Part shown: positions 26,105 to 52,422 of the stretch, piece after piece | Numbering within the stretch: the stretch's first letter is position 1 | Layout: each line of letters begins with the position of its first letter | Source: Macrostomum lignano | Taxonomy: Eukaryota | NCBI GenBank assembly: GCA_002269645.1 | Contig: NIVC01001363.1 | Location: forward strand, 124,001 to 188,000 | Direction: 5' to 3' | DNA length: 64,000 bases | Notes under the pieces: generated by a model | Databases searched by the model: none | Seen by the model: the letters and a program-made list of their open reading frames with translations, nothing else | What the model was told of the DNA's origin: nothing | Program-made: the position numbers and the translations under genes

Positions 26105-27072
26105 CAAGTACCACGATTGTATAACAGGACGGAAGACTCAAATATCGTGTAATTTTTTGAAGGCCGATTTCCTGGGAAAAATACTGCAGAGATACTCAGG
26201 AAAAACGTTTTTTTTCATCACAAGATCAACGGTTTCATTTGATCTGGAGCAGTGAAGCTTATCATTTTTTAATGTTGTATGCACATGTTACTGTGTTGCA
26301 ATTTATATAGTTTTGCAGTGAAAGTTCCATTTCCTATTGATTTTGTCGTTATTTCACAAGCCCAAGTTAAAGTTGCAAAAATTCAGAAATGATTTTTTGT
26401 TCTTTGGCATAATAATGATGCCTTTCTACAGGGGGGTTGTAGCCTAGCGGTTAGAGCGTCGGGCTCACGACTTGAAGGTCGGGGGTTCGATTGCCGATCC
26501 CATCGGAACAATTTGTATCCTTGAGAAGGACACTTAACTCTGCATTGCTTCAGTTCACCCAGCTGTAAAATGGGTGCCAGCATTAGCTGGGGTAATTGAG
26601 GGTGTGTGTGGCGACCCCCCAGTCCTTGGACTGAACAGCCGTACGCAGCCTTCAGATGCGCCGCGCAATAGCTGCGGCTGAGCTGTCGGTTGCACATCTG
26701 GCCCAATTGGGGCAGGTGTAATCAATTATTATCATATCGTTATATAAATACAATATGAAAAAATTATCCTAGTAAACATAGTTTACTTTTAATTATTTAG
26801 ACAGGGCTTACGAATGGCTACTAATTTGTATGCATTAAAATGGAACTTTCACTACACAACTATGTAAAATACAGCAGAGTAACATGCTGTGCAATGTGCA
26901 TGCCAAATTAAAGAAATGGAAATATTCACTGCCCCAGATCAGATGCAATCGTTGGTTTTGTGATGAAAAAAGATTTTTTCCTATTTCTGCAGTGTATTTT
27001 TTACAGGAATTGGCCTCCAAAAAACTGCGCGATGTTTTAGTTTTCCATTCCGTCATGCTACAGTGGTCCTTG
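26105..27072. mobile_element. Older copy of the CAAGGAC foldback/MITE family
   Basis: Diverged arms (~26105-26370 and ~26837-27072) homologous to the 16787 element; TSD ATGGTATT/ATGTTATT (7 of 8 match). Confidence 0.8.
26431..26731 (+). mobile_element. tRNA-derived SINE with CORE-like domain
   Basis: A box TAGCCTAGCGG, B box GGTTCGATTGCC, CORE-like CCTTGAGAAGGACACTTAAC...CAGCTGTAAAATGGG, ATT tail. Confidence 0.8.
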
Positions 27073-32387: not shown

Positions 32388-33803
32388 TCAAAAGTCTGGC
32401 TCCCCTTTGAAAGATTTTTGTTCCATCGGTCTTGCGACCGACCCAGTCTTAGAGGTCCTTATAGAATCACTGCAGAATGCACAACTGCCGTCAGAACTTG
32501 AGCTAATAGAGCTTCCCATTGTTTTCACCATCATCAGTTTTGTCGGCCCGGGATCTGATCCATGTCCGACAGTGTTGGACAGACGACGGGACCTGCGAAA
32601 CACGTCGCTTCGCAGTAGGATGACAAAGAGGGCCGGATTGATGAGGTTCATGATGCACATTGCGCCGCCTAGCAGGCACAAGTAGGCGGTGTCTATGCGG
32701 CTACGCTCGGCCACTATGCCGTAGGTGATGCGAGCTAAGCAGTAGCCGCGGCACAGCAAAAATGTGGCCAGATTAATCAGCGCATTTAACCGATAGACTG
32801 GAGCCGTGAATGAGACGCGCAGCATTTGCATCAGTTTGCGCAGGTGAAGAAAAATTGAATTCACCTCGGTGAGCAAAGCCACAGCTGTGTAGCCAATGAA
32901 CATCCGATTAGATAAGTTGTAGACAAATTTTGATATCACCTGTGAGTGTAGAAATGTGTTTATATTGATTTTTATCAATAGTAGCTTATGTCATACACCT
33001 ATATCAATATAGATTTAGTCAATAATTAATTATTCTTTGTTAAAACAGTCAAACTGCTAAGTTTATTGTGCCTAAGATACTAAAAAGTTGCTTTCAATGG
33101 GGTAAAAATTTGCATTCTATAATGAGATCCCATTAAAAATGATAACAGTCTAAGCTTATACTTACAGCAATATGATGAAGACTTAGCTCCCATTCCTTGA
33201 GCAACTTTCCTTGAATTAGGAGGTCCATAAAGTCGTAGAAAAAGTATCCTAGAAATATATTTGTGAAGAAGAAATGCATATTTCTTAGATCAAAAATTTT
33301 AGTAATAGAAGTATAAATGAAAATATTCAAACCTGTTGATATGGCAACCATATAGTATGTAAATGGAGATATATGGTTTATCAAATCCTGCCACATCTCA
33401 GGATACAAGTAGAAACTACAATTAATAAAGAAATAGTGAGAGCAGACACTACTTAATATAAAAAACTTGTCTTTATGTTTTATGTTAATAAATCAGGATA
33501 ATATTACATGTTATTTAAACACCCTCTTTAAAAGATCAATAAGAACCAATAATACTTACCAAGAAAGGTCCCATATGCCAATTATTAGAGCATGAATCCA
33601 CGATAGAAGAAGATTTTTCCATTTCCATAACTCCTCTTGATTTTTCGCTCGATGTACAATGATTCTTGGGGTCCAATCACGGTTAAAATTTGATTTAGTA
33701 ATCCGAAAATTGCAATAGTAAATAAAGCGGCACAAAATCCTCCCTTAACAGAAACTACACCAGCTTCGTTAGGAAAAGCATATTTGTAGAGTTCATTTTT
33801 CAT
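32388..33803 (-). CDS. TLC-domain protein (TLCD1/2-like); exons 33803-33560, 33415-33333, 33248-33166, 32939-32388; 1-nt frameshift in exon 1
   Basis: WKWKNLLLSWIHA, GYFFYDF, LHH and EVNSIFLHLRK motifs; GT-AG introns in consistent phases; adding one C at the GGGG run (~33668-33671) restores the frame. Confidence 0.88.
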
Positions 33804-35243
33804 CTGAACTACTCAAGAGAACACAAAGTCTATAAATAACTAGCTAATGCTAGAGCCAAACCGTAAGGCGTTGGGTTGGTACGTGAGCGTGGCAACATTT
33901 AGTTTATCTTTGTAATTCTCCAAGTTAAAATTGTGAAGTTATACATTTAAAACGGAAATAACAAAATTTTCGTCAGAATTCAAGATATATTCATATAATG
34001 CAACAAGAGAAAATACAGCTTTTTACTTAATATAAATTTATTATTTAGAACTTTCCCAGTATTTTTATCGCAAAACACTTTGTAATTGTAACAGAAACTT
34101 ATAGTGCAAATAAGTCGTAAAAACCAATGCAACATTGTCCGAGCCCGAGAGCTTGCTTATACGAGCTATTCATCTTAAGAACAACTTGAAATCGTTCATA
34201 GTGGTCATTGATTCGTCTACGAAGTGAAAATATCAGGTAATACCCCTAGGGACCCATAATGGGTAAATAATGCATTTTTACTGGCCATTATAATGACATT
34301 GAATGCCACTTAATGGCATTATAATTGCCACTTAATGGCATTATAATTGCCATTATAATGCAAATTCTATATATATAAAATGCATTTATAATGTGGTTGC
34401 AATTAATTAGAAATAATGCATTTTTAGTCATCTTGCGAGCCATATATACTCGTATATATATGAATACATTGCACTTCGTACCTTCGTTTAAATCGGCTCA
34501 TTAAAACCGTACTTAGTTCTATTCTGGTTTGTCTTACCAAACCATGGGCGATGTACACACAATAAGACACACTCAAAATAACACAATTGGTTAGTTTTAT
34601 GTATAAGACAGGTCTCAACTAAGTGAGTGAGCCGAAAATGTAATATTTATTACCAAACAAAGAAGCCAAATGTAAAAAAAAAATTTGTGTCCCCGGAGTT
34701 TTACGTAAAAGCAATTAAACATAAAAAACTGCAAAAATGTGACAAAGAATTAGGTGTATCTAAACAAAGCGCACGGCATATGAGAGAAAACGTAAAACAT
34801 AACATGTAGGATAAATATAGCTGAGCATTAGGCGCGCATGTTTTGTGAAAAAGGGCTTTTTAGTTTAGAAAAACTAACAAGAAACAAAGCTTGCTTAAGT
34901 ACAAGTACTAGATGGTACTGGGTCTACGATGTTAGCCAGCCGGCGTTTGCTAGCCGAAAGTTTGCCAGTTAGTGTCTCTTTCTTGGTCCCGTCTAATTCC
35001 CCAGTCATATTTTCTTCCTGTGTCCTAGCAATAGAGCTTTTAGAATAAGCCTAGCACACACACATCGGCTGGCTAACATCGACAAAAGCTACACAACAAT
35101 AGCTACCCAGCAGATAAATCAGGAATACGTACCAGAAAAAATTTCATGCAATGATTACATTGACAACCAGGACTACTTACAGAATAGAAAACGAGACAAG
35201 ACAATGACCCTGAAAAACTGACGCGCGTTTGAAGTTATCTGAG

Positions 35244-37640
35244 CTAATCGTGCTCACACTCTTCCAACAGGGGTACCAGACAAAAACTGCCTGATGGCAA
35301 GTTCGGAAAGTTGACATCGACTCGAATGCACCTCGCAGCCACATCAGTGAGACGTATGCAATTGTAATTTTCCCGAGTGGGTTCCTGACTCGTAAAGATA
35401 AGCATATTTCGGAGTGGAACATCAGATGTAAAAAAAGCAAGAAAGATTGCTTGTTCAGATGCACTAGCACCAATATTGGTAAAATCCGGAACAGCATTGA
35501 ACAGTAAGTCGATTAAACGACATTGTGGAGTCAGAAAAGAGCCAAAGATTTTGCTATCGGCAAAATGATTAATAGCAAAATATGAATTTGATACATCCAG
35601 GACATACGAACTACATGTTTTTAAAGTGCAATCCGCAGAAGTGGTTGTTAAAATTTTACCCCCAGAAGCGCCTAGAGTTCGATTTTCGCGCTCAGGAGGA
35701 TTGCAGTAGTGCTTAGCGATGACAAGGAGTGCATCAGAAATTGAGGGATTGGAGCCTGCAGCAGGTTGCAGTGAATACAATAGCACTTTTAGCCAGAAAA
35801 ACTTTTCGGAAATTTGCTTTCCATGAAATCGACTGCCAAAATGAAGCATATTAAAGCCATGCATAGCTGACTCAAAGGGAAACATTGATGCACAATACAG
35901 AGGACCAAATCGTTCATACTGGTCGGGTAGATGATAGAGAAGATGAAAATTAAGAAGCATAACACGTTCGCCAAAAAACTCAGGACACAGGTTAAGAAAC
36001 ATATTGCACAGACGTTTTAAAGTTGAAACACAAGAATTTTGCGAGTACAGCAAGTTATAAATAGAATTAAGAAGAAGGAGCAGGCCCCTAAGTTCGGGAT
36101 TTTCGATTCGTGGAAGCAGAATTGATGGAAACAGATACAGAGCAAAAATCTTGTATGTTTTCGCTTTCCAAAGTGAGAGCTGACTAATTGGAGGAACATT
36201 GCTAATACCTTGGGGAAGTTTCAGTTGCATAATCTGAGAGTCGATTACATTGACAGATGCTGAGCCTAGCACACGGTAATGATTGGGATTGCAGCTTTTA
36301 GTCTTAGAATCAGTCAAGAAGGCTAGAATGTGTTTTACTTGACCTTCCCAGAGACAATGCATAGAATCAACAATGAAATTTTCTGGAAAACGAATGATTT
36401 TGAGAAGAGCAGTTTCGCGTTTGATTCCAAAATAATCCTTAAGCCCTTGAGCCTTGAGAACTGTGAGATGCTGCGCATGCATGGCATTAGTTCGAAGCGG
36501 AATTCCATGGACAGCGGGGAAGACACGAACTTGGCCTTTTTCTGACACCTTTAGAGACTTGCCAGGTAGGATGCATCTGGGACAAGCAAATTGTCCGTTG
36601 AATTGCTTGATTCCAAAAAGGTGAGATAAAGCGGGCAAATCGCAGGTAAAAAACGAGAAGTGAAGAAAAAACGTCACATTCCTTACTTTTACACACGAAG
36701 GCAAGCGATTTAAAATAGTAGGCAAAAACTTTTCAAAATTCGGCTTTCCTCGATTGGTAAACAAAGCGATTGTGATAATGTTGACAAACTTCTGGCGTAA
36801 TCTAACAGGCAAATTGAGGCACAGTGCACAGAAAGGCCACACAGACATTTCAGAAACTTTAAAGAAGTTTGCTCCGTCAGCCGAAAGAAGAAAATACAAG
36901 TGAAAAATGTCAGGAGATGAGCCGGTTTCTAGTTCATTGCTAACAGCAGAGTTCAGAATGTCAGTTTGAAATCCTCGCCTTAGCTCACGCTGGTAAGATA
37001 AAATATCATTTAAATGCCTTTCAACTGTAAGCTCCACCTGATGGTTTACATTTAAGAGCCATAGTCCCTCGAAAGAGTCGACTGGATGTTCACTACAGTT
37101 TATAAGTAGACACGCTAAACAAACTTTCACAACGAAGTCCGGTTTTAAAATGAATGAACGAAGCAGAACCGCTTCCATTGCTTTGTAAGATGTAGGTAAA
37201 GCAGCGCGAGGAGACAGAATGGAAATGAGGCGAAGCATGTTTTTAACAGCTTTCTTGGAAACGTTCGACAAGATCATCCACAACATTAGAAGGGCACATT
37301 TGACCTCCATAGAGATACCTTGGATACAAAAGACAGAAAGAAGGTTACTATCCTCATCCGCAGAAAATATTTCAGGGTGCTCGATATCAGATGGACCAGC
37401 TGCCTGCACTTCATTCTCGTCATCAGCAGGAATTGCAATAGTCGGTTGCTCGCCGACGTTTGCTTGAATTGCAGCGGAAGAGCTCGAATCGCTGTATTCA
37501 CCCATGGATGTGTCAATCGAATGTGTACTTGAATCAACCGACATCGAGACATATGACGACCCAGAGGACAGACTTTCCGACGACCCAGAGGACAGACTTT
37601 CCGACGACCCAGAGGACAGACTTTCCGACGACGAACTCAT
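35244..37640 (-). CDS. CACTA/EnSpm-family transposase, 798 aa, uninterrupted ORF
   Basis: SADG...SVWP...NLP..LR, CDLPA...FNG..ACPRC, DSMH..EG and MFPFES motifs; N-terminal SESLSSGS repeated 3 times. Confidence 0.9.
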   Translation of the reverse strand: MSSSSESLSSGSSESLSSGSSESLSSGSSYVSMSVDSSTHSIDTSMGEYSDSSSSAAIQANVGEQPTIAIPADDENEVQAAGPSDIEHPEIFSADEDSNLLSVFCIQGISMEVKCALLMLWMILSNVSKKAVKNMLRLISILSPRAALPTSYKAMEAVLLRSFILKPDFVVKVCLACLLINCSEHPVDSFEGLWLLNVNHQVELTVERHLNDILSYQRELRRGFQTDILNSAVSNELETGSSPDIFHLYFLLSADGANFFKVSEMSVWPFCALCLNLPVRLRQKFVNIITIALFTNRGKPNFEKFLPTILNRLPSCVKVRNVTFFLHFSFFTCDLPALSHLFGIKQFNGQFACPRCILPGKSLKVSEKGQVRVFPAVHGIPLRTNAMHAQHLTVLKAQGLKDYFGIKRETALLKIIRFPENFIVDSMHCLWEGQVKHILAFLTDSKTKSCNPNHYRVLGSASVNVIDSQIMQLKLPQGISNVPPISQLSLWKAKTYKIFALYLFPSILLPRIENPELRGLLLLLNSIYNLLYSQNSCVSTLKRLCNMFLNLCPEFFGERVMLLNFHLLYHLPDQYERFGPLYCASMFPFESAMHGFNMLHFGSRFHGKQISEKFFWLKVLLYSLQPAAGSNPSISDALLVIAKHYCNPPERENRTLGASGGKILTTTSADCTLKTCSSYVLDVSNSYFAINHFADSKIFGSFLTPQCRLIDLLFNAVPDFTNIGASASEQAIFLAFFTSDVPLRNMLIFTSQEPTRENYNCIRLTDVAARCIRVDVNFPNLPSGSFCLVPLLEECEHD

Positions 37641-38100
37641 AATTTCAACTTCAGTTCTACGAGTGTTAGGATAGACTGAAAAGTTTGGAGAAAATTACGT
37701 ACCCGTGCCATCGAAATAAGAATGTGCACCATCATCTATCGATAAATATGAAATGAAGTGGAATAAATTAGCTCGGTGGCGTTAAAGTTGAAGGAGTTTA
37801 GATTCTTCCACATATATACATTTTGAACGACTACGGAAATCATTAAGGGTATCCTAACTACCCATACAAAGAGTGCCAACACTTTTCAAACGCAACAGTT
37901 ATTATTCTAAAAAAATAATTAAGGTAGTCGCTTCATTTTATATTAAAAAAACACTACAGAGTAAGAGTTTGACTTTAGCGCAGATAACGTAAAATAGGGA
38001 TCGATTCAGTTCAAAAACGTTATAGTTTGTTACATGTCGAATGGCAGTTGGGTGATTGCATCTTCAGTTAAAATATTGCGACACACGTTTAGCCGTCAGT

Positions 38101-41100
38101 CTAATCACCGGCCTTTCGCTTGCGGAAGGTTGACTCTGGACCAAGTCGATTCAGAGAGTCTTTGACGGCTGTCCACGCAGAAACCGTTTGATCCCTCGGG
38201 ATATTGAAGGCCTTGTTCAGAATGCCTAGTTTTTTTTAAGAAAGATTTTATAGTAGCAGCAAATTCACACAAACATTTTCCAACAATGGAATGGCTACAG
38301 TGAGCCAGTTTGAATTTTTAGCTTTAAAAGACTATATAGAATGACCTGCATCCATCTAATGCCCACAATACTAAGTCAGTTGCCAAAAAACATTCAGTTG
38401 CAAAGAAATTGTATCGCTTACTCTTAAGATGGTCTTGCACTTCTCCTGGAGCCTTTGGCCTTTGTGTCGTGCCTTTGTACTCTCCGAAAACATGCGATTG
38501 CACATACTCGACGCCATACCTCGCAGAAGCATATGCCCTGATGAACTTCGACGTCGTTGTACGAGGCAGATCTGAGAAATTGCAAACTCGCCCATCGTGG
38601 CCTTCAAATTCCTACGAAAAAGTACAAAGAAAATTGGTACTCAGGACCGATTGTTTGGATTATGTCATGATAAATGTCAGTGAAATGTGAAAACGTCAAG
38701 CCACATGAAGAAGAGCGAAAAATAAGAAAAACAGTAAAGTAAAATGGCAAAGTAAAGCATATAATAATTTTATAGTAAATGGTTAGTAAAGAAAGTAAAT
38801 TAATTTGCACAGAAACTGAGAAACCTACCTCCTTAAGGAAATCAGCTGATACCATTTGATGCAAGCTGGATGATGAAGTGCGAATCTTCCTCAGTTTGTG
38901 AGCGATGAACCGCTTCAAACTGTCTGAAACATTTGGTGTTTCACATTTGTACTATACTGATAGTGATTACATAAGCAGCACGAAATGCAGGATTTGTGAG
39001 TAAAAAAGTTGTATTACACTGAGATAATGAGAATAAAGCATAAAAACAAAAGCACAAGAAAGAAATAATTAAACCTTACCCATTCCTTCCTGAAATTCAG
39101 CCAGTGTGAGAGGCTTGGAATTTGTGGGATCGTTTGCACTTGCTGCCTTTGCTGATTCATGAGCCTGAAGAACTTGAGGAAGTAGTTCCGGTGGTAAGGC
39201 ACGCTGTTCCTCACTTGCAATTAAAGCCAATGATGCCTCAGAATTTTGGTGTCTGTCTTCAACATGAGTACCAGCTGTCCTTGGCCGCTTGTTTGCTAGA
39301 CTGCCTTGAGATTGCTTCCTAGCACGAGAATGAGCAGCTGTAGGTGTCGAAACTGGACTTGGGCTTACAAAAGAAACCTGAGTAGGAGGCGGAGTAGGCT
39401 GCCAGGTCTCATCATCATCCGAATCGTCAATATCACCTGCATCTTCATCACTTGAGTCTTCTTGTTGTCTCATGAAGACTTTCATATGAGACTGGACATG
39501 ATCAGAGAGCTCGGAGTTCTCCTTGTTTTCAGTTATGAATGCATCAAGCTCCTTCTCAAGGTAGATCATTTTTGACCATGGTTCAGCTGCAATGAACATG
39601 CCATTGAAAATGCCATCCTTGAGAGCAAGTGGGTAGTCCTCACCCTAAAATAAAAATGTGATTCATTATTAGATTTTGAGCTAATATTAGACCAAATTAA
39701 TTTTTTAATTAAGAATTATAAACAAACTAAATAGAAAATTCTTTTTAGAATAGTTAACAAAATAGATATAGCCTATTAGAAAGTTAGACAAACTAAACAA
39801 AAGAGTCCTTTAGAAAGATAGACAAGCTAAAGAGAATAAATCCATTGGAAAAATAGACAAACTTAACTAAAATAAAACTTTAGATAGCTTAATAGAGTTG
39901 GCAAATATAGCCTATTAAAATACTAGGAAAACTAAAAGTATAAGAAATATTAAAATAGAAAACTAAAGCACTGGACAATAGTTCAAATAGTAAACTTGCT
40001 ATTGGATAGAATATAGGGCCTACCTTATCAGCAAATAGACCTTCCTATGAATTGAACACCTTAGGCTTAGCATAGGAATAAAATAGCTCATAGATAAATA
40101 GATATATAAACATACTGAGACCACTATATAAAATGTTATAAAAATCAATGAAGGCAGTCAAGTTTGAAAATGAATACATTATACAAAATATATATTAAAA
40201 AAATAGACAATAAGACATTTAAAAATGGCCAAAATTCTATTGGGTTGTTAGGAAAGTTCTGTCCGTTTTTTATTTTTCTATGCAGAGGATCATGAAGCTG
40301 TGTTGGATCCAATACTTGTGTATGCATATACAGCCAGAGTTGTGGTCATTCTAACCAAGTCATTTGCTTTTCAGCGCCCAATTATGGCCAGAAATTTTGA
40401 ATTAAACAGCATCGCTCTAAGGCAGTGCATGCTATATGATTTTCTAGCAGGTATTACAGCAGCCGAATCGACTCGACGCCTGTGCAGTGCATTTGGCCAG
40501 GATGCTGTCTCTGACCGCACAGCCCGTCGTTGGTTTGATCGCTTTCGCAGCGGCGACTACAGCCTTGCTGACGAACCTCGCCCTGGACGCCCATCTGAGA
40601 TAGACACTGAGCTGCTGCGGACACTTGTGGAGGCCAATCCGCACCAGACTACACGAGAGCTGGCAGCCACTCTTGGGTGCTCCCATGTGCAAGTCGCTGA
40701 ACACCTGGCTGCCATGGGCAAGAAAAGCAAGCTCGGACAGTGGACCCCCATGACCTGACTGACAGGGACCGTCAAAGCCGAGCAGACATTTGCACCTCAC
40801 TGCTCTCCTACAAGAGAACAACAGACTGGCTGGCCTCAATACTCACTGGCGATGAGAAGTGGGTGATGTACGTTAATATACACCGCAAGCGCCAGTGGGT
40901 TGATGCCGGCAAACCGCCACAGCCAGAGCCAAAGGCCCCACTGCACCCTAAGAAGGTGATGCTCTGCTGTTGGTAGGACAGTGAAGGAGTTGTATACTTC
41001 GAGCTGCTGCCGCCCAACACCAGCATCACCGCCGAGCTCTACTGTAACCAGCTGCAGAATGTGGCCGACTGCCTCCACACACAGCGTCCAGGGCGTCAGC

Positions 41101-42249
41101 ATGTTCGCTTCCTTCATGACAACGCTCGGCCGCACACCGCCAATTTGACCCGACAAAAGCTGCTGGATCTGGGCTGGGAAGTGCTGCCCCACCCACCGTA
41201 CAGCCCCGATCTGGCCCCTACAGACTACCATCTTTTTCGAGCGCTGCACCATCATCTGAAAGAGAAAACGTTTGAAGATGACAAAGGGGTCAAGGACTGC
41301 ATTACTAACTTTTTTGAATCACAGCCCAAGGATTTCTACAGAGCTGGCATCCAAAGTCTGCCCTCTCGTTGGCAGAGGGTCATCGATTGCGATGGCAATT
41401 ATTTTACTGAGTAACACTGCTGCATTCCTATAAAAACTCGCTCCAACATATTTTAGTCAAAACGGACAGAATTTTCCTAACAGCCCAATATATTCTCTCT
41501 ATACTTAGAATAGAGAACATATAGAAAAGAAAGGAAAGCTAGCCAAACCAACCATAGTTCTTTATGCATGAGTTAGCTAATCATACTCTAACATTGATAG
41601 CAACTAAACAGCCTATTTCAAGCACTAAAAAGTAGTCTTTTGCAAATTAAACAGCCTTGGCCTAGTATTACTAAAACTATAAAAAGATGAAATCTTAGAA
41701 TAAGCCTAATTCACTAAAAAATACCTAACTAGTTCTATAGTTGGGCATCAGGGCCTACTCCCTACATGGCCTAAACTAGGCATATGGCTATAGAAGCCCA
41801 GCCTACTAGTAAAACAATATAAAAAACTATTTAGCTTCATTTAACTTTAGGCCCTAATAAATATATTTGTAGGAGTTAATAGATATTTGATAGTTAGGCA
41901 CACAAAACTACATTCATTTTAAGCCATATGCACTCAAGCAATTTATTTATTTTTTCAAATCCTGCAGAATTTTGTATACAATATGCAATAGCATTTGTAA
42001 CAATTACTAGGATTAGGCCTGGGCCTAGTAAGTAAGCAAAAAATTACTTACAAAAATGAATTTCACATCAGGCTCATTATGGCTAAGTGCAAGACTGCCA
42101 CGGGAAAAGTTATGATAAGTTCTTGTCTTTCGAATGAAGAATAGTAGGTACTTCGAATCATAAAATGACGCAGCAGAATTTGCCAATCGTTGCACTGGTT
42201 TCACTACTCTATTCGAAGAGCGCCTACTTGAACCAGCCGCAAGATCCAT
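38101..42249 (-). CDS. Transposon accessory gene with BEN-like C-terminal domain; exons 42249-42052, 39644-39080, 38923-38829, 38611-38422, 38225-38101
   Basis: Five exons join in frame through GT-AG introns (phases 0,1,0,1). C-terminus TTSKFIRAYASARYGVEYVQSHVFG...PKAP...AWTAVKDSLNR has BEN-like spacing. Confidence 0.72.
40240..41488 (+). mobile_element. Mariner transposon nested in intron 1 of the BEN-like gene
   Basis: 30-bp TIR TTGGG(T/C)TGTTAGGAAA(G/A)TTCTGTCCGTTTT; TA TSD. Confidence 0.95.
40384..41414 (+). pseudogene. Mariner DD34D transposase with one frameshift and one premature stop
   Basis: GRP, TGDEKW, HDNARPH and YSPDLAPTDY motifs; frameshift near 40745-40749; TAG at 40974-40976. 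Confidence 0.93.
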
Positions 42250-43481
42250 TCAAGATCCACCAACTCTTAGTGTCTGAAGTCAATAAATTCAAACCTATAA
42301 TAATAATATATTAACTGAATTGGAATAATTAGAAATTGGAATAATTGTCACACCAGATTGATTAATGCAATTAAATTGTTGAGAGGATGTCATAAAATAG
42401 TGAAGAAAACAAAGCTTTTATTTCGACAATCAAAATCGATTGAACAAGCTATGTTATAGAGAAATAACAAAAGCGACCCAATTTTTGCGTACGAATGTAA
42501 GTTTGTTTGCTAGATAAGAACCTGAAATAGAAATTTAATTACGAATTTCGCTTCGAGCAACAAAATAATCCAGCACGCAATTAGACCGCCATTTTAATTT
42601 CAATTTGTGATGGTCTAATTCGCTACGGCTGGATATAAAAAATGCATTTGTAATTTGATAATTGTTACAGAAAATAATGCATTTTTATCGCACCACGTTT
42701 TATTATTTGTTCTTCAAAGTTAGCAACGGAAGTATAATTTATAAATACACAGATGCGCAATAAAGCCAATCTTGAACTAAATTCATGCTTATTTTGTTAA
42801 ATAGTGTAGATAGAACTTTTACTAAAAATGCATTAAAAATGCACGTACATATAATGCACCAAGAATGCACTATTTTGTCATTAGATTCTGAAAATGCATT
42901 ATTTGTCCATTTTGGGTCCCTAGGGACATATTCAAAATGCCTATATAATTCACAACAAAATTTAATATTACATGTACGCGCTCGTATAAATTTAGAACCC
43001 AAGTGTACGTATTCTTTAAATCAAAACATGCATGGACAACTGAATTTGTATAGTAGCTATTAGACTTATAATTCAGCTGGTCCATGGATGAAACTACATG
43101 TGTACAAATGTATACACATAAGAACTGTAAACATGTACTGTAAATTCACGAGGTCTTTCGCGGGTACGAGATAATCTTCGCGGGCAGCATATGCAGCAGT
43201 TGAAGCCAGGTTCCGGATAAGCAATTAAGATTATACATGTACATGTAAAGCTATAAATTTTACTATAAAACCAACATATACTGATGTACATGTTAAGTAT
43301 AGCTAGTAGGTACCTGATACCTTAAAGCATGAAAACTACTATGTATTTTCTGTTAATAGATTCTATATACTAATTAGTTAAGACCAAACTCCTTGCTTAA
43401 AAAATCAATTTAATAAGTAGTAAATTTATCAATAAGGTTTTATCTATCTTTCATAAGAGCCCGAGTTGTCAAGTTTAAAAG

Positions 43482-43678
43482 ATCGGCACGTACGTTTCCG
43501 CTCTGACTTGCACTGACACGTGAGCGACAGGGCTGACCAACTTAAAAATATTACATTAACAAAAAGTGCAACTACCTACAAAATACAGCTGTTTGACCTG
43601 GGCTGGGTGACTGGGATTGGTGCTGTTAATAGAGATTGATTCGCGTGTAAGACAATCACCTTAGCTTTGTTTGCACTG
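43482..43678 (-). promoter_or_regulatory. Orphan diverged copy of the peptide-gene upstream region, with no CDS attached
   Basis: Homologous to the reverse complement of 49063-49275; CACGTG conserved at 43517-43522. Confidence 0.7.
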
Positions 43679-44035
43679 CCCACAAGTATTAACGGCCTTG
43701 GATCGAGCTGGGTTGCTCCATCAACACAATGCGTATTCGTTAGGGGTGCTTAATTGTATTAGATTATCTGCCGGGAGGAGTGCGATACTCAAGTTGTGGT
43801 GAAGTGATCCTCAGTTTGGAGCAGTGCTTATTTGACATTTATTTGACTGCCAATCAATGGAATGTAGCTGGATCTGTAACTGGATGATTAATTTTTTGCC
43901 TTCTCATTGATTTCTACTTCAGAATATAAAAAAAGTGTTGGGAGAGTTATATATGTTGAAAATGCCAGTGCTTTGGTTTTGATCGACCGACTATCGGAAA
44001 CATATTTTCGATATACTATCGGAAACACCAGCCGA

Positions 44036-44578
44036 GATCAGAAGCACCGGAGATAAGAAACGCAGAAGATCAGAAACACCGGAGATAAGAAACGCAGGAG
44101 ATCAGAAACACCGGAGATAAGAAACGCAGGAGATCAGAAACACCGGAGATAAGAAACGCAGAAGATCAGAAGCACCGGAGATAAGAAACGCAGGAGATCA
44201 GAAGCACCGGAGATAAGAAACGCAGAAGATCAGAAACACCGGAGATAAGAAACGCAGGAGATCAGAAACACCGGAGATAAGAAACGCAGAAGATCAGAAA
44301 CACCGGAGATAAGAAACGCAGGAGATCAGAAACACCGGAGATAAGAAACGCAGGAGATCAGAAACACCGGAGATAAGAAACGCAGGAGATCAGAAACACC
44401 GGAGATAAGAAACGCAGAAGATCAGAACCACCGGAGATAAGAAACGCAGGAGATCAGAAGCACCGCGGAGATAAGAAACGCAGGAGATCACTGGAGATAA
44501 GAAACGCAGGAGATCAGAAACACTGGAGATAAGAAACGCAGGCGATCAGAAACACCGGGAGATCAGAAACACCGGAAA
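44036..44578. repeat. 32-bp minisatellite (~16 copies)
   Basis: GATCAGAAACACCGGAGATAAGAAACGCAGGA units. Confidence 0.93.
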
Positions 44579-44850
44579 CATTGAAGATCGTTTTCAGCAT
44601 TGCCTGTGTAGATTTCTATGTATATTTTATCTTCGGAAACTTGTTCACCAACCGCGGACTAAGCATTTCGACAAATTGCAAGCCGCTTCCATTAAGCTTG
44701 CCAAATTCTTCGAATGCAACGTCTTTCTACGTTGATAGTTTCACATGCCAATCTCAAAACCCCAAACAAAATATCAATTATTACATTAAAAGCATGATGT
44801 TGTTGATTTCGATTTTCCATTAGTCTCTTATCTATAGCTACATGTACATG

Positions 44851-45439
44851 TAGCTTCAATGCTACAAAAGAATGTTGAGTCCGGAACGGTCATGCAGAGG
44901 TCGGCATGCCTTCATTTTGAATAAATAGGAGCTCCTTGTTAAGCTTAAGCGTGTATTTGTGCTGCGTATTCGGGCACTTGGGCAGTCAGATCAGAGTCAA
45001 AGCCGGGGTTCTCCGAGCTCAGCTGCTCAGCTCAGAGCACCGCCTTGGCGACCTTGCCGGCCACGCGGATGGCCTTCCTCCAGCGGAAGCGCCTCCTCCT
45101 GCGCCACTTCTCGGCCGGCTGCAGGGCGCCGTCCTCGGACATGTCGGACTCCTCCAGGTTGGCCAGGGCCTCCAGCGCGTTCATCGCATCGGCGTCCTCG
45201 GCCTGCTCCGCGCTGGGAGCGGCGGCGGCCAGGGCCGTGCAGAGCAGAAGTCCGAGAGCGAGTTGCCACTTCATGGTTGAGTCTGTTGCTGTGCGAGCTG
45301 ATGAAGCTGAGAGTCTGTGACTACTTTTCCTGTTAATTGATCTCAGCCAGCTGCTTTAGGCGACGCATTTATGCAGCCGAAATCGGCACGTTTTTCCGCT
45401 CCGACTGCCTTCTGTTTGGACTGCTGGGCTGGCACGTGA
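44851..45439 (-). repeat. Left arm of ~585-bp inverted duplication
   Basis: Reverse complement of 49218-49798 with a few substitutions and a 5-bp indel. Confidence 0.93.
45032..45274 (-). CDS. Secreted prepro-peptide, putative cationic antimicrobial peptide, copy 1
   Basis: Signal peptide, acidic pro-piece (11 D/E), and Arg/Trp-rich amphipathic C-terminus WRRRRRFRWRKAIRVAGKVAKAVL. Confidence 0.8.
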   Translation of the reverse strand: MKWQLALGLLLCTALAAAAPSAEQAEDADAMNALEALANLEESDMSEDGALQPAEKWRRRRRFRWRKAIRVAGKVAKAVL

Positions 45440-46020
45440 CAAGGGCTGACCTCTCCCAGATCGCACACTCTCTTTTCAATCATTTGATACAAAGTTTCTG
45501 GTGGCAAATAGAACCGAATTCCTGTATAATTAATAAGGTTGTTGAACAAGCAACTTAATCGGTAAATTTACACTAGAGTTTTTTCGTTTAGTGTTACGTT
45601 TGTTTGAGCGGCTGTTGCACTCTGGGGGTCTTGCTACTGCAAACACGGCCCTATTTGAATAGTCATCAAATTCACATTCTATTGAAATGCGCAATTTAAT
45701 AGCTCTTGTAGCTTATGAGCATCAGGAACTCGCGATGAAGAGAGCTGAGCTTCACGATGGAGAATCCATGATGAATACATTGAAATGATCGATAAAGCAT
45801 AGGCGTAACAACATCCAAGACTCTGGGGTTCCGTTTTAATTATTGCTGATGATTGAATTCAGCATTTCTGATGTGAAATCCTTATACTTTTGTTTAATAA
45901 AAGATTTGTATAGAGAAGCCGTGTCTGAATTTCAAGGTTATCCACAAAGTCCCATATTAAATATGACTGATAACTGAGAATCATTTCCCCCAACAGCTAG
46001 ATAATCATGCATTGCTCTTC

Positions 46021-46570
46021 AACTGAGAATCACTGCTCACAACTGCTCACAACTGAGCATCACTGCTCACAACTGAGAATCACTGCTTACACGTGAGAAT
46101 CACTGCTCACAACTGAGAATCACTGCTCACAACTGAGAATCACTGCTCACAACTGAGAATCACTGCTCACAACTGAGCATCACTGCTCACAACTGAGAAT
46201 CACTGCTCAAAACTGAGAATCACTGCTCACAACTGAGAATCACTGCTCACAACTGAGAATCACTGCTCACAACTGAGCATCACTGCTCACAACTGAGAAT
46301 CACTGCTCACAACTGAGAATCACTGCTCACAACTGAGAATCACTGCTCACAACTGAGAATCACTGCTCACAACTGAGAATCACTGCTCACAACTGAGAAT
46401 CACTGCTCACAACTGAGAATCACTGCTCACAACTGAGAATCACTGCTCACAACTGAGAATCACTGCTCAAAACTGAGAATCACTGCTCACAACTGAGAAT
46501 CACTGCTCACAACTGAGAATCACTGCTCACAACTGAGAATCACTGCTTACAACTGGGAATCACTGCTCTT
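46021..46570. repeat. 20-bp satellite (~27 copies)
   Basis: AACTGAGAATCACTGCTCAC units. Confidence 0.95.
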
Positions 46571-46625
46571 CACAGCTTTGGTACTCGTTAATAAGTATTA
46601 AGCATTTACCCTACATGGGTCTTAA

Positions 46626-48810
46626 CCCCCCAAACACTGATGGCACATGCCAGGCGTGCCATGGGTCTCATTTAACCATATACTGAGAATACATGTCTAT
46701 GGCCTAGATGGTTTAGCATAAATATGACTTTTCAACATTCCCATAAGTCACGGATGGCATGCTGTGCCTGCCATGTTATTTTTTCGCAATTTTTCAACTA
46801 TATTTGACTGCAAGTACGGGATAGATAAAAAACTTTTAAAACTTTAAAAAAAGGACAACAACAGAACAAAGAACAGTTAGGTAAACAATATTTAATGCAT
46901 CGATGAGGCATTTAGGAGGAGCGTTTTGAATTTCGTATTCTGAACGTAATTAAGTTTTACACCGTACCACCAGTGCAACTACTGTGCTGCTGCAGTGTGC
47001 CAATTCTGAAAGCACACGACAACACACAGCCCGGGCTCTCCTGGGCTTGTAAGTGCAATAAAAGTGCCATATGAATCGATATGAAAACTGGCTTAAATAC
47101 TAAGTTGCAAAAATTGACACCATTGCTGTAGCAGACTCTGCATCGCTTTGTCGGCCTTGCATTGGCATCTGTCGGCGGCAGCTTCGATGGCACGTGCTGT
47201 GAGACGGCCCTGCGCTTCGATGTATTCAGACGTTTGCCCCGGCCTGTTTGCTCCATGAGAGTGCGGATCGCAGCTATCAAAAATTCAACGAATTTGATAT
47301 CGCTTCCTTCTTGGCAGTTGCAGACCCAGGCACTGCGGACCAACTGCAGCAAAACGTGGAACCCGAGCTTCTGGTGCCATCTGTAGGTTCTTCTCCCCGC
47401 ACTGTAAGGCTGCAGTGCTGCATCAAAGCGATCAACGCCTCCCATGTTCTTATTGTACTGCAGCACCGAATTCGGCTTTAAAACTGACTCCTCCGCTCCG
47501 CCTCGGATCACTCGCCTCACTTCCGTGCTTTCAGCAACACCGTGCGTGTCCAACAAGTGCACAGTTTTGCGACCGCTTGCCTAGCTCATGTCTACCAGCT
47601 TGACTGCGAGAACATCGCCGCGGCGCATCTGGGAGTGACTGACGGGTTGCAGGGGCAGCATTTTCAGCTCATTCGGCACACCTCGATTGGGCCTCACCGT
47701 CCCAGTCAGTAAAGTACTGCGTTCCAGCAGAAACTGCGCCAGACGGAGCGATGTGATGTGAACCAGCTCTAACAGAAGACCTTGTGCCCCAGGTCCAGCA
47801 AATTTTTACTCAATTCAACGACGATCTTCTCGCTCAACGACAAATTCCCGCAGTTTAATCCATCTCAAAACTTGTCGTCATCCTGCTTAGCAGCATGTAC
47901 ATGAAAGTTCCACAGAAAACCTGTCAAAGCTTCTGTCCAGCAGTACACCTTGAGGCCGAATCTGGCACGCTTGTTGGGCATGAACTGCCGGAAAATGAGC
48001 CTGCCCTTGTACATGACCAGTTCTTCATCGACAGACACCTCTTGACTTGGGCTGTAATTTGCTTGGCAAATATCGCGGGCAATGTTAAGAAACGGTCGAA
48101 TCTTTTTCAAGGAGTCCTGGTGGTTGACGGTAGTGCAGTCGTAAAATCGAAGGAATGATAAAATCTGCACAAACCGATCCCTTCCAAGGCAATGTTCTTT
48201 CTGGAAGTATTCGCCGCCGTAGAAGTCTCCCGTGGACCAGTACATGTGCATTTCGGGCTTCTTCACAAGACCCATGTACAGGACGATTGCTAGAGACTTC
48301 TTCACCTCATTGTCGGTACACGCTCTCCAAGTTGATAGCAAATTGGGAAGAGCTCCGTCCTGATCTTCAGCTGTCAAATGTTGAAGCTTCATGTCAGCTC
48401 GGGAGTTGGTCCAGATGCGAATGGCAGACACCATGCAGATTAGCGGTGAGAAAGTGCTGCAGATAGAATTGCACCTGGGCCATTTTACCTTCAGGAGCTT
48501 GTGCTTGAATGTCTGGGTTCAGGGCCAGGCACAGCGAGGAATTCTCGTGGTTAAGCACAGCGAAACGTACAATTCCACAATCCACTGGTTAAGCAGCTGT
48601 GTCAGCGGGAAAATAGTCGCACTGAAGAGGATCTCCAAGGCAACTGCTGCAAAATGCGGAGGATGGCATCGGAAAATGATGCGCTACCTCCACCGGTGCA
48701 TTACTGGCAACATATTCTCTAAGCTTGGAAAATTTTGGAACTGACTATTCAGCACGGTGGCTCCTTTGTTGCGTTGCGTTGCCTTGTTAGATGCTAGAAG
48801 ATGCACGATG
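46626..48810 (-). mobile_element. piggyBac-like (PGBD4-type) transposon remnant
   Basis: TTAA|CCC end at 46622-46628; frameshifted transposase with SVDE..YKGR...PNKRARFGLK, YNKNMGGVD and CRVC; other end not found. Confidence 0.88.
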
Positions 48811-48953
48811 ACTGCTCACAACTGAAAATCACTGCTCACAACTAAGCATTGCTGCTCACACCTGAGAATCACTGCTCACAGCTAAGCATCACTGCTCACA
48901 CCTGAGAATCACTGCTCACAACTGAGCATCACAGCTTACACGTGAGAATCACT
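48811..48953. repeat. 20-bp satellite, second block (~7 copies)
   Basis: Same unit and orientation as 46021-46570. Confidence 0.9.
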
Positions 48954-49217
48954 CCTCCCAGCAGATAATCTAGGAGTACTACATGCAATTAAGCAGCACT
49001 AACGACTAGGCGTTCTGTTGATTATGGAGGTCAACACAGCTACAAGGGTTCATGCTTGAATGCAGTGCAAACAAAGGCTATTAAGGTGATTGTCTTACAC
49101 GCCAACTCATCCTAACTGAGAGCAGCAATCCCAGTGACCCAGCCCAAGTCAAACAGTGTTTCGGAGGCAGTTGCAATTTTTGTTGCTGTGATATTTTTAA
49201 GTAGGTGAGTCTGGCGC

Positions 49218-49798
49218 TCACGTGCCAGCCCGACAGTCCAAACAGAAGGCAGTCGGAGCGGAAAAACGTGCCGATTTCGGCTGCATAAATGCGTCGCCTA
49301 AAGCAGCTGGCTGAGATCAATTAACAGGAATAGTCACAGACTCTCAGCTTCATCAGTTCGCACAGCAACCGACTCAATCATGAAGTGGCAACTCGCTCTC
49401 GGACTTCTGCTCTGCACGGCCCTGGCTGCCGCCGCTCCCAGCGCGGAGCAGGCCGAGGACGCCGATGCGATGAACGCGCTGGAGGCCCTGGCCAACCTGG
49501 AGGAGTCCGACATGTCCGAGGACGGCGCCCTGCAGCCGGCCGAGAAGTGGCGCAGGAGGAGGCGCTTCCGCTGGAGGAAGGCCATCCGCGTGGCCGGCAA
49601 GGTCGCCAAGGCGGTGCTCTGAGCAGCTGAGCTCGGAGAACCCCGGCTTTGACTCTGATCTGACTGCCCAACTGCCCGAATACGCAGCACAAATACACGC
49701 TTAAGCTTAACAAGGAGCTCCTATTTATTCAAAATGAAGGCATGCCGACCTCTGCATGACCGCTCCGGACTCAACATTATTTTGTAGCATTGAGGCTA
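49218..49798 (+). repeat. Right arm of inverted duplication
   Basis: Reverse complement of 44851-45439. Confidence 0.93.
49380..49622 (+). CDS. Secreted prepro-peptide, putative cationic antimicrobial peptide, copy 2
   Basis: Protein identical to copy 1; CATAAAT TATA-like element at 49284-49290. Confidence 0.8.
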   Translation: MKWQLALGLLLCTALAAAAPSAEQAEDADAMNALEALANLEESDMSEDGALQPAEKWRRRRRFRWRKAIRVAGKVAKAVL

Positions 49799-50696
49799 GC
49801 TGGGAATGCAAAAGAGAAGCATCATGTTTAGGCTTGATTAGGTATGAATTTTTTTGGTGATGATTCACAAAGACTAAAAATAAAGTTTTTACTGGTGGTT
49901 TATCAGTGTACTATAAAGTTAGACAATTAAATCACAAAAGTTGTGCTCGCAGCTTACTACTGCACACAGCTCTGTTAGTAGACAGTTGGCAAAAGCTTGT
50001 GCACAACAATGGGAGAGGTGATATTAACAAATGAGTGTCGCACATTTCTAATTATTAATGATATAGGCATACAAAATTGGCATTAAGGAAGCATGACGCA
50101 TAAATTTATTAATAAATTCAAAAACCTAGCATTCAAGTAAATTTCTATCGTTCTTGCGACTGAAGCTTAAAATACACGCAGGAGACAACTGCAACACTTT
50201 ATTAGATAATAACAGACAAATTTTCGGTTACATTGTCCTGGAATAACACTGGCTGGAAACTGGAATAATATAAAAGTACGCACAATCAATCAGCTTAAAC
50301 GTGCATCATTTTAACTAGCAGTAAGTGTTATTAAATGCTTCTATCCGATTTAAAATATGATTGAGCTCTTTCCCGATGAAATCGGTACCTAGGCTAAGAA
50401 GCGTCCCAGTCACTTGAGTTGTCCCAGAGTTTTTGTCTGCGACTTTGAAACGATGCTGGGGCGGCAGAGTCGCACTTTATAACAGCTATATTGAGTCTAT
50501 TTGAGTTAGTGAAAAAGTTAAACGCTAACACTTTTAGACGACTTTTTGGCGACTTTTATTACGATGCTAAAACTCAATAGTCGCTATAGTCACTAGCGAC
50601 TTGTTTGCAATGACTCTTTAGCGATTCTCTATCAAAATTAACTACTACCTAGATACAAAAGTACACGATAAACTTTAATTTAACGGACATTCAGAA

Positions 50697-52422
50697 CTAT
50701 CCGAGAAGTGCCTGAACAGCCCGCACAATGGACCGCTCGCAGCAGGGACAATGCGGCGGCGGGCCAGACTGTCTCCTAATAAAATTCGAGCAGATCTCGC
50801 ACAGGCGGATAGCGTGAGTCTCCACTCGAGCAGCCGCCAATGCGCAGACCGTATCGTACTTGGCGGTACACACGGGCTGATTGATCCGGCAGAACTGGCA
50901 CAGATCTAGCAGGCTGAATGCGGGCTCGCGGAAGCGGAGAAACAGGCAGCTGAACTGCGTTGATGCCCAGCTGATTGCGCGGACCATTCGGCGGAAGGCG
51001 TCGTCCGGGTTGGTCTCGCTTGGCACGATGCCAAACCGGCTAGCGAGAGGGCGCGGGGAGGGGCCAGGGAGTTTCTTAGAAAAAGTCACTCATGTTTGAG
51101 ACAGCAGACTTTGGTATGAACCTAGTCTTTGAGAGAGAGTCATCTGCTGGGGTTCGTCTTTAGGGACGAAGTCATGGATGAGGTCATAGATGAGGTCACG
51201 GATAAGATCATAGATGATGCCACGGATAAGATCATAGATGATGCCACGGATAAGATCATAGATGATACCATGGATAAGATCATAGATGATGCCACGGATA
51301 AGATCATAGATGATGCCATGGATAAGATCATAAGTGAGGTCACGGATAAGATCATAGATGAGGTCACGGATAAGATCATAGATGATACCATGGATAAGAT
51401 CATAGATGATGCCACGGATAAGATCATAGATGATGCCATGGATAAGATCATAGGTGAGGTCACGGATAAGATCATAGATGATGCCACGGATAAGATCATA
51501 GATGATACCATGGATAAGATCATAGATGATGCCACGGATAAGATCATAGATGATGCCATGGATAAGATCATAAGTGAGGTCACGGATAAGATCATAGATG
51601 AGGTCACGGATAAGATCATAGATGATACCATGGATAAGATCATAGATGATGCCACGGATAAGATCATAGATGATGCCATGGATAAGATCATAGGTGAGGT
51701 CACGGATAAGATCATAGATGATGCCACGGATAAGATCATAGATGATGCCACGGATAAGATCATAGATGAGGTCACGGATAAGATCATAGATGATGTCACG
51801 GATAAGATCATAGATGAGGTCACGGATAAGATCATAGATGAGGTCACGGATAAGATCATAGATAATGTCATCACAGCCTAAGAAAGCAGTGTCGCCGCTC
51901 TCACCGGTACAGGAACAGCACATCGTCCACAGTGATGTTCTGCCTGCAGCGATGGTCGGAGTGTCGGCTGAAGTGCTCATTCAATCTGGCAGCGAATCGC
52001 TGGGGCGTGTCGGCTAGCCAGTGCTCGGGGCCGCCAGTCAATCTCATCAGCCGATGCCAGCGCTCTAGCAGGCCAATCAAATCGTGACAGGTCAGGTCGC
52101 CGCCTCTGGCAGATTTGAAAAACTCGAACAGCAGATGAGAGTTGGGATTACTAGCGTTGCCAGGCGGTAACCAGGCTCGCCAGCCGTCTGGCCCGCGGCA
52201 AGTGGGATCGGGGAACAGCTGTCTAGTCGATTGACTGGCGCGCAAGTGGACGTAAAACTCGGCGCTAGTTGCGTCCGGCCGGCCGGACAAAAAGCTGGCC
52301 AGCTCGTCTACTAAGGTGACGCTGTCGGACACGGCGCGGGGTGAGGGCGGAACGGCTAGGGGACTAACAGGATTGCTGACGGATGAAGCTCTGCTGCTAT
52401 CGCGCCCCGCCGCATATTGCAT
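50697..52422 (-). CDS. RING-finger protein (IAP/MDM2-style C-terminal RING); exons about 52422-51905 and 51121-50697
   Basis: CQFC...H..LCEIC...CPCC C-terminus; GTGAGA donor at 51904; the join needs a 1-nt correction at the A5 run 51080-51084. Confidence 0.55.
51171..51872. repeat. 24-bp minisatellite (~29 copies), probably intronic
   Basis: GATCATAGATGATGCCACGGATAA variants. Confidence 0.95.

Follow-up and report, generated by a model that had tools for sequence, protein, structure and literature searches.

A lineage-specific family of putative host-defence prepropeptides in the flatworm Macrostomum lignano

In a 64,000-nucleotide stretch of the Macrostomum lignano genome (assembly GCA_002269645.1, contig NIVC01001363.1, positions 124,001 to 188,000 of the forward strand; hereafter the window), an 80-residue open reading frame (ORF) encodes a small precursor with a signal peptide, an acidic propiece and an Arg/Trp-rich cationic C-terminus. 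We found that this ORF is a genuine, transcribed, single-exon M. lignano gene and not a chance ORF. The gene is duplicated and belongs to a multigene family in which the N-terminal parts are conserved, the peptides diverge, the charges of propiece and peptide vary together and the promoter is shared. We read the family, with a modest lean in favour of this reading, as lineage-specific prepropeptides of the host-defence type (antimicrobial or cytolytic), whose cationic peptides would be charge-neutralised until processing.

A duplicated, transcribed gene encoding an 80-residue precursor

The ORF runs on the minus strand from 45274 to 45032 (243 bases; ATG at 45274-45272, stop codon TGA at 45034-45032) and translates as MKWQLALGLLLCTALAAAAPSAEQAEDADAMNALEALANLEESDMSEDGALQPAEKWRRRRRFRWRKAIRVAGKVAKAVL. 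The GC content of its coding sequence (CDS) is 70%, reaching 91% at third codon positions (GC3), and that of the flanks is 42%. A tblastn search identified a second copy on the plus strand that encodes an identical 80-residue protein, and the two copies, A and B (Table 1), stand head-to-head 4.1 kb apart. Only one substitution between them, a synonymous one, falls in the CDS, as against 9 in 342 flanking positions (2.6%); the binomial probability of at most one in the CDS is 0.012. The same head-to-head layout is present on the homoeologous or allelic scaffold NIVC01001888.1 (L002), where the promoter motif of the partner copy lies at L002:23-35. The copy number of the window paralogue in the assembly is five.

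The exact 80-residue protein is found in GenBank as BOX15_Mlig024774g2 of M. lignano, annotated only as "hypothetical protein", and a V-to-I variant is PAA73004.1 (BOX15_Mlig024774g1). The corresponding locus (L001) matches 50274..40032 of the window with 100% identity. The annotation of GCA_002269645.1 (Mlig_3_7) was made from RNA-seq-derived transcripts and was expression-filtered (Wudarski et al. 2017, PMC5730564); the 80-residue model therefore reflects transcription, of near-identical copies that are not distinguishable from each other. Two further GenBank proteins, PAA68913.1 and PAA73003.1, are 127- and 129-residue models of the window gene that start with MAFLQRKRLLLRHFSAGCRAPSSDMSDSSR, which is the antisense translation of the 3' end of one copy, spliced to the 5' untranslated region (5'UTR) and CDS of its partner. 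These two longer proteins are read-through or antisense annotation artefacts of the head-to-head pair, and the real product has 80 residues. Taken together, the GC3 of 91%, the identical second copy, the transcript-derived model, the at least 26 paralogues and a published SignalP/ProP listing (both described below) place the ORF beyond chance.

In the encoded protein, residues 20-55 contain 11 acidic and no basic residues, and residues 57-80 contain 11 basic residues, no acidic residue and no Cys; the net charge is about -10 for the propiece and +11 for the cationic peptide. The initial annotation had proposed this architecture together with the ORF coordinates, the residue counts and a charge of +6 for an 18-mer released after the Arg run. 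The coordinates and counts proved exact on recount, the strand being minus and the 18-mer containing six basic residues, and the architecture is strengthened by the conservation pattern of the family. The amphipathic tail described there holds for the last 13 residues, AIRVAGKVAKAVL, whose helical hydrophobic moment of 0.65 is reached by 0.5% of shuffled sequences (p = 0.005), but not for the 24-mer as a whole, whose amphipathicity as a helix is not significant against shuffles (p = 0.27).

Judging from the family-wide A-L-A motif, the signal peptide is probably cut after A16 (45227) or up to three residues further on. At its other end, the window peptide finishes in KAVL directly before the stop codon, without the Gly, GK or GKR that would signal amidation. 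An AlphaFold2 (AF2) model of the precursor predicts helices at residues 4-17, 27-41 and 53-79 with low confidence (predicted local distance difference test, pLDDT, 62; predicted template modelling score, pTM, 0.27), and we therefore claim nothing structural beyond helix propensity. A PDB sequence search with the 24-mer returned no match.

The precursor had appeared in an earlier prediction. Supplementary file 5 of Irvine et al. (2023, PLoS Pathog 19:e1011508, PMC10414684) contains BOX15_Mlig024774g2 as an exact string match, as well as the V-to-I allele, and lists the paralogue Mlig001477g4 separately as "Ungrouped 544". With the column meanings taken from the Methods of that paper (SignalP 4.1, ProP 1.0 and 11 predictors of antimicrobial peptides, AMPs), the row for the precursor gives a signal peptide as present and one propeptide cleavage site, yielding the 18-mer FRWRKAIRVAGKVAKAVL, so that the SignalP and ProP check proposed in the initial annotation had already been made with a positive outcome. 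The 18-mer itself is predicted to be AMP-like in fAMP-LP group 142, with 11 of 11 predictors positive. Group 142 was dropped before synthesis by a "single genome" filter and its row stands in the pre-filter table only; the flatworm peptides that were synthesised are fAMP-LP-5, -17, -82 and -123. The same pipeline left out peptides shorter than 10 residues, a length below which many short family members fall.

A Macrostomum family with conserved precursors and variable peptides

HMMER searches assigned at least 26 M. lignano paralogues, arranged in gene clusters, to the family. A phmmer scan of 1.84 billion representative proteins returned seven true relatives (E 1e-10 to 1e-4), all of them from M. 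lignano except one Logan contig, together with one repeat-protein false positive, and no relatives in other flatworms were found among these representatives. In a profile search, 22 clusters were recovered, all of them hypothetical proteins of M. lignano except for one 929-bp Logan contig (SRR31628392). The window protein lies within the family with phmmer and profile E-values of 1e-10 to 1e-48; a word-indexed search found only the window gene itself. Pfam gave three unrelated weak hits at E <= 10 and no assignment for the window protein, and for 17 family members only weak matches to PF22991 (Lock_Gag1-like) in six short forms (best E 1.6e-4), none of them on the window protein. We take the PF22991 matches to be spurious and caused by the acidic helix.

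The members share a signal peptide of the pattern M(K/R)(W/Y)Q(L/I/F)(A/V)LGLLLC..LA, and the window protein begins with MKWQLALGLLLCTALA. They also share a propiece core motif, A(E/D)AMxALEAL, which the window protein carries in the stretch DADAMNALEALANLEE...AEK|WRRRRR. In every paralogue the cationic peptide is preceded by KK; the window protein has E-K at that site. The peptides that follow KK are hypervariable and cationic, range from 6 to 37 residues and mostly end in G, GK or GKR, although this amidation signal is frequent and not universal, since one paralogue (P0008) ends in SKK. They include short alternating peptides (FVRVRVRLG, IFRVRVHIG, FIHIHFG and WLRVRARVRIG), long W/R/Y-rich peptides (WRIRFRRIRIRWRRVYRVVRTAYRIYRHLPFPGK and WLGRRRRVRIRWRKVLRLVYRIYRHMPLGK), a Pro/Arg-repeat peptide (FLRVRLPRVRMPRVRLPRVRLPRLRVRFRWSKK) and a two-Cys peptide (WRIKSACKIFRRLLHLARKCYAKKG).

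We calculated divergence from 14 distinct coding sequences. The signal peptide has 85% amino-acid identity and a ratio of nonsynonymous to synonymous divergence (dN/dS) of 0.19, and the propiece 57% identity and a dN/dS of 0.77. In the mature peptide, roughly half of the residues cannot be aligned, and identity at the positions that can is 48%. The proportion of synonymous differences (pS) is 0.62 in the mature part versus 0.32. Among 26 distinct members, precursors with a more negative propiece tend to carry a more positive peptide; the Spearman coefficient between the two net charges is 0.79 for the whole set and 0.65 for its 18 short forms, both being raw values that do not account for phylogeny. 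The propiece and peptide charges span -2/0 (FIHIHFG) to -9/+18, and those of the window gene are -10/+11. The "charge-matched" propiece that the initial annotation had seen in a single protein is thus visible as a family-wide trend.

In addition to the coding sequence, the family shares a promoter module, consisting of GGAAA[AC]ACGTGCC followed after ~12 nt by GCATAAAT and located about 95-125 nt upstream of the ATG. Alignment of the 170 nt upstream of the paralogues showed that both elements are conserved while the flanks have otherwise diverged. The 13-mer matches twice in the window, once per copy, where 0.18 matches are expected, and none of 100 shuffles reached two matches. In 145 kb of related loci it matches 17 times, always 110-130 nt upstream of a family ATG, pseudogenes included. 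The presence of the element only at family genes indicates that the family is probably co-regulated by one factor. A basic helix-loop-helix (bHLH) factor of the TFE/MITF type could be the regulator, which we offer as speculation and as a lead only.

The genomic loci hold 2-7 copies each, and the intact copies are single-exon. On NIVC01001664.1 (L004), at least four intact and three broken copies occupy 47 kb; another locus (L006) has five copies in 20 kb and another (L005) two copies in 3 kb. The broken copies on L004 are pseudogenes at 26217-26354, 33519-33626 and 35162-35269, one frameshifted and two truncated after MRWQFVLGL, and all three keep the promoter element. The Pro/Arg-repeat member lies at 541-813 of contig 42504 of Logan assembly SRR31628392 (L003), has the promoter module with one mismatch, and was found only in the Logan assembly and not among the GenBank M. 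lignano proteins. One paralogue (P0015, PAA, Mlig004661g1) has a 21-residue internal duplication of the propiece. Two older-assembly models, P0012 (UniRef A0A1I8JEL3, a 634-residue "Sushi domain-containing protein") and P0023 ("SERPIN domain-containing"), contain a member fused to, or mislabelled with, unrelated genes.

No relevant paper turned up when the literature was searched in full text for the gene IDs and for the strings of the peptides. The family gene IDs were also not found in the searched supplement parts of Grudniewska 2018, Wudarski 2017 and the 2025 intestine paper, an absence that is uninformative. The initial annotation had regarded the peptide as putatively new and assignable to no named family. 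No named family was indeed found by Pfam or phmmer, but a large Macrostomum multigene family exists; the precursor and its 18-mer had already been predicted by Irvine et al. (PMC10414684), but the family behind them is undescribed. This Macrostomum KK-cationic-peptide precursor family is defined here and is undescribed in the literature searched; what goes beyond that prediction is the family itself with its amidated short forms, the co-variation of charge, the shared promoter and the clustering in the genome, all of which were unrecognised there.

Table 1 Features of the duplicated gene units in the window
Feature	Position	Strand	Basis or remark
Duplicated gene unit A: 165 nt promoter + 5'UTR, CDS, about 181 nt 3' flank; ~589 bp	44851..45439	-	Alignment with unit B
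Complete single-exon CDS, copy A, 80 codons + TGA	45032..45274	-	Identical to GenBank M. lignano models; GC3 91%
Signal peptide, residues 1-19, MKWQLALGLLLCTALAAAA	45218..45274	-	85-94% identity among paralogues; signal-peptide positive in Irvine 2023; AF2 helix 4-17 (low confidence)
Acidic propiece, residues 20-56, 11 Asp/Glu, sole basic residue K56	45107..45217	-	Core motif A(E/D)AMxALEAL; ends E-K, paralogues K-K
Cationic C-terminal peptide, residues 57-80, WRRRRRFRWRKAIRVAGKVAKAVL, 11 basic residues	45035..45106	-	Aligns with long-form paralogues W..RRRR..R(I/F)RWR(K/R)
Arg58-Arg62 run, putative furin/proprotein-convertase-type site; cut would yield 18-mer	45089..45103	-	ProP 1.0 prediction in Irvine 2023 supplement
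Predicted mature 18-mer FRWRKAIRVAGKVAKAVL, 6 basic residues, amphipathic tail AIRVAGKVAKAVL	45035..45088	-	Residue counts; Irvine 2023 supplement
TATA-like box GCATAAAT	45367..45374	-	~95 nt upstream of ATG; in all paralogue promoters
Family-specific proximal promoter element GGAAAAACGTGCC	45385..45397	-	2 matches in window, one per copy
Distal E-box CACGTG (TCACGTG context)	45433..45438	.	Edge of duplicated unit; TCAC[GA]TG in most paralogues
Duplicated gene unit B, head-to-head with A, 97% identity	49218..49798	+	E-box 49219-49224, promoter element 49260-49272, TATA-like 49283-49290
Second complete CDS, copy B, one synonymous difference (GCC/GCT)	49380..49622	+	tblastn, alignment

Proposed function and competing readings

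The conserved signal peptide would direct the precursor into the secretory pathway, and the acidic propiece, with its net charge of about -10, may neutralise the +11 cationic peptide until processing. Since the dibasic site of the family is degenerate (E-K) in the window protein, a proprotein convertase would more likely cut after the RRRRR run, giving FRWRKAIRVAGKVAKAVL, with the 24-mer as the alternative product. The freed Arg/Trp-rich peptide, with its predicted amphipathic helical tail, could then act on membranes as an antimicrobial or cytolytic effector. Most paralogues would in addition be amidated via their C-terminal Gly, GK or GKR, and the window member would not.

This layout has counterparts in other animals. 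As in the frog dermaseptin precursors, a conserved signal peptide and acidic propiece precede a dibasic site and a variable cationic peptide that is often Gly-amidated. Unlike the dermaseptins, the flatworm precursors have no sequence homology to them, would be cut at KK or the Arg run instead of KR, and are single-exon; the dermaseptin family PF03032 (FSAP_sig_propep) had no Pfam match in the window protein or in 17 members. The likeness to dermaseptin precursors is convergence, not membership. In frog preprodermaseptins, Vanhoye et al. in 2003 are said to have described a conserved signal and acidic propiece with a hypervariable mature domain, in which synonymous divergence was reportedly raised as well.

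The Hydra arminins and periculins likewise combine an anionic N-terminal part with a cationic C-terminal peptide in lineage-restricted multigene families. The Hydra periculin has eight Cys, whereas the window peptide has none, and activity and roles in the microbiome have been demonstrated for the Hydra peptides, whereas the window family is known here from sequence. The phmmer scan of 1.84 billion representatives revealed no homology to cecropins, arminins or periculins, and there was no cecropin hit in Pfam. The cathelicidin family PF00666 gave no Pfam hit either, and the window propiece has 37 residues and no Cys, compared with the four conserved Cys of the cathelin prodomain.

Arg/Trp- and Pro/Arg-rich AMPs are known from several sources (indolicidin, tritrpticin, lactoferricin; Bac5, Bac7, PR-39; designed (XR)n beta-peptides). 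The likeness of the family to these is compositional only, as seen in RRRRRFRWRK of the window peptide, FLRVRLPRVRMPRVRLPRVRLPRL of P0008 and FVRVRVRL or IFRVRVRI of the short forms. Unlike the window family, these AMPs are either synthetic products or parts of larger precursors, namely cathelicidins or lactoferrin.

Expression data are available for one paralogue, the 501-nt transcript RNA815_1838.3. Table S11 of Brand et al. (2020, PMC7336406) gives it the in situ label "gonads", maps it to Mlig001477.g4 and refers to Ramm et al. 2019, a study of socially sensitive genes. The primers of RNA815_1838.3 match L004 exactly at 9977 and 10320-10340, and the 364-bp amplicon spans the family gene at L004:10001-10267. 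The probe shares only 74% identity with the window gene across 136 nt, the longest shared run being at most 10 nt, so that the "gonads" label says nothing direct about the window gene. In the positional RNA-seq of Arbore et al. (2015, PMC4490696), the transcript has 93 reads in head-only fragments, 94 in head plus testes, 49 in head plus testes and ovaries and 176 in the whole worm, and is placed in class 0,0,0. These counts indicate that it is not enriched in any region and is present in fragments without gonads.

Several points weigh against a host-defence role. For every family member, such a role is deduced from sequence features; among these, dibasic cleavage and amidation are equally a neuropeptide signature. 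AMP predictors have a high false-positive rate; Irvine et al. synthesised 20 peptides, of which 12 proved inactive (PMC10414684). The dN/dS of the mature region is about 0.5, and values above 1 were looked for and not found; we therefore make no claim of positive selection. Synonymous sites, too, are more diverged in the mature region, part of which may be alignment noise, and the charge correlation is uncorrected for phylogeny. In addition, the one paralogue with expression data was labelled in the gonads, which are not a typical barrier or immune tissue, and its positional RNA-seq signal (Arbore 2015) is low and uniform.

Among the alternatives, it is unlikely that these are fast-evolving, secreted reproductive or germline peptides, produced in testis and ovary and aimed at gametes, eggs or the mating partner. 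Reproductive proteins typically diverge fast and expand in tandem, and the in situ label in Table S11 (PMC7336406) agrees with such a role, but the same transcript is equally abundant in gonad-free fragments (PMC4490696) and the probe does not cover the window gene. A germline site would also have a parallel in the Hydra periculin, which is described in PMC12466427 as expressed in the female germline. If the reproductive role were antimicrobial protection of eggs or sperm, this alternative would merge with the host-defence reading. Peptides that protect eggs or sperm include Hydra periculin, the ceratotoxins of the medfly and andropin of Drosophila.

That the family comprises neuropeptide or peptide-hormone precursors, with short products such as FVRVRVRL-NH2, IFRVRVHI-NH2 and FIHIHF-NH2 acting on receptors, seems to us quite improbable. 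The order of signal peptide, spacer, dibasic site and amidated C-terminal peptide is canonical for such precursors, most paralogues have both the KK site and a terminal G, GK or GKR, and transcripts of a paralogue were found in head fragments (PMC4490696). Flatworm npp, spp and FLP precursors likewise have a signal peptide, dibasic processing and an amidation signal, the last as in most paralogues. The pattern of conservation is, however, the reverse of that expected: conservation lies in the prepro part, and the peptide is the hypervariable portion, differing in sequence, length (6-37 residues) and structural class, which argues against a neuropeptide family. Unlike npp, spp and FLP precursors, the mature peptides are unconserved and extremely cationic, with charges of +11 to +18 that, like the more than 25 paralogues, are atypical of neuropeptides, and no orthologues were found in other flatworms among the 1.84 billion representatives. 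The window gene itself has the basic cleavage site but lacks the amidation Gly, whereas most paralogues have both.

We regard as similarly improbable a third alternative, a cytolytic toxin or defensive secretion against eukaryotes (predators, competitors or prey) that would be stored in gland cells or rhabdites. Such a toxin would share its biochemistry with an AMP and differ in what it targets. The family peptides are hypervariable, and melittin and the aculeatoxins, latarcins and conotoxins have the same architecture and evolutionary mode. The one paralogue with expression data shows no gland-specific or regional expression, and to our knowledge M. lignano is a diatom grazer without a venom apparatus, which we count against a toxin. 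Lastly, a chance ORF, transposon fragment or annotation artefact without a product has a negligible probability: piggyBac-like remnants and tandem repeats lie between the two copies and the 127- and 129-residue models are clearly artefacts, but the GC3 of 91%, a protein identical between copies with diverged flanks, at least 26 intact paralogues with a conserved promoter, the transcript-derived models and the low copy number (five for the window paralogue) all stand against it.

Genomic surroundings and significance of the family

Between copies A and B lies a broken piggyBac-type transposase (46957-48434, minus strand) with at least two ORFs, of which the part at 47865-48434 is a piggyBac-type remnant matching Pfam DDE_Tnp_1_7 (E 2.5e-33). 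On either side of this transposase are 20-bp tandem arrays of the unit ACTGCTCACAACTGAGAATC, at 46042-46568 and 48811-48957; in the homoeologous locus L002, the array extends much further. We considered the 589-bp inverted repeat as part of a transposon with long terminal inverted repeats around the piggyBac ORFs, and rejected this on two grounds: the repeat comprises an entire gene unit, from promoter through CDS to 3' flank, whose copy number is low, and other family members lie elsewhere without piggyBac ORFs. A 32-bp tandem repeat, GAGATCAGAAACACCGGAGATAAGAAACGCAG, is present in 17 copies at 44034-44570, ~280 bp past the end of gene unit A, and also occurs in L002.

Farther away, a 24/120-bp tandem repeat at 51176-51867 contains 29 copies of GGATAAGATCATAGATGATGCCAC with several frames open (ORFs 51090-51980), and could be a repetitive coding exon or a satellite. 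About 8.7 kb of the window (34244-42925) is missing from NIVC01001888.1, in which the sequence joins 42926 to 34243. This segment, which contains a 798-residue ORF with DUF1258 at 35244-37640, is probably a mobile-element insertion. The neighbouring gene on L002 (L002:7839-9141) encodes a TRAM_LAG1_CLN8 protein (ceramide-synthase-like), and by homology corresponds to 32500-33800 of the window, with 99.6% identity. At 6354-12118, on the minus strand, the window contains a Ty3/gypsy-type long terminal repeat (LTR) retrotransposon with long intact ORFs, in which gag with a zinc knuckle, protease, reverse transcriptase and RNase H lie in 8150-12118 and integrase in 6354-8213. Its gag-pol ORF also matches a cold-shock domain (E 7.5e-7) and PNMA.

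The principle underlying the host-defence reading, a conserved prepro part and a variable cationic peptide, is familiar, and the family itself is undescribed. M. lignano is presented in PMC8717057 as the only flatworm with stable transgenesis, and RNA interference (RNAi) protocols exist for it (PMC11075559), which makes a compact, co-regulated family with a 170-bp conserved promoter directly testable. If the peptides are active, they would provide natural short (8-10 residues) amidated peptides of alternating Arg and hydrophobic residues as well as long W/R-rich peptides, a new independent case of charge co-evolution between propiece and peptide, and an entry point for studying how a flatworm that regenerates and is exposed to microbes keeps bacteria in check.

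We also put forward, tentatively and with less confidence than the host-defence reading itself, a broader proposal in which a Macrostomum-restricted, co-regulated arsenal of more than 25 peptides would be the main gene-encoded antimicrobial system of the flatworm. Such an arsenal would be governed by one shared promoter element, with or without TCACGTG, would evolve like the peptides of frog skin and cone snails, and may be deployed in and around the germline for gametes and eggs. Canonical AMP families are reportedly lacking in flatworms, a gap that the arsenal, if this proposal is true, would fill. If the peptides turn out not to be antimicrobial, they would still represent an unusually clear hypervariable secreted peptide family in a model flatworm.

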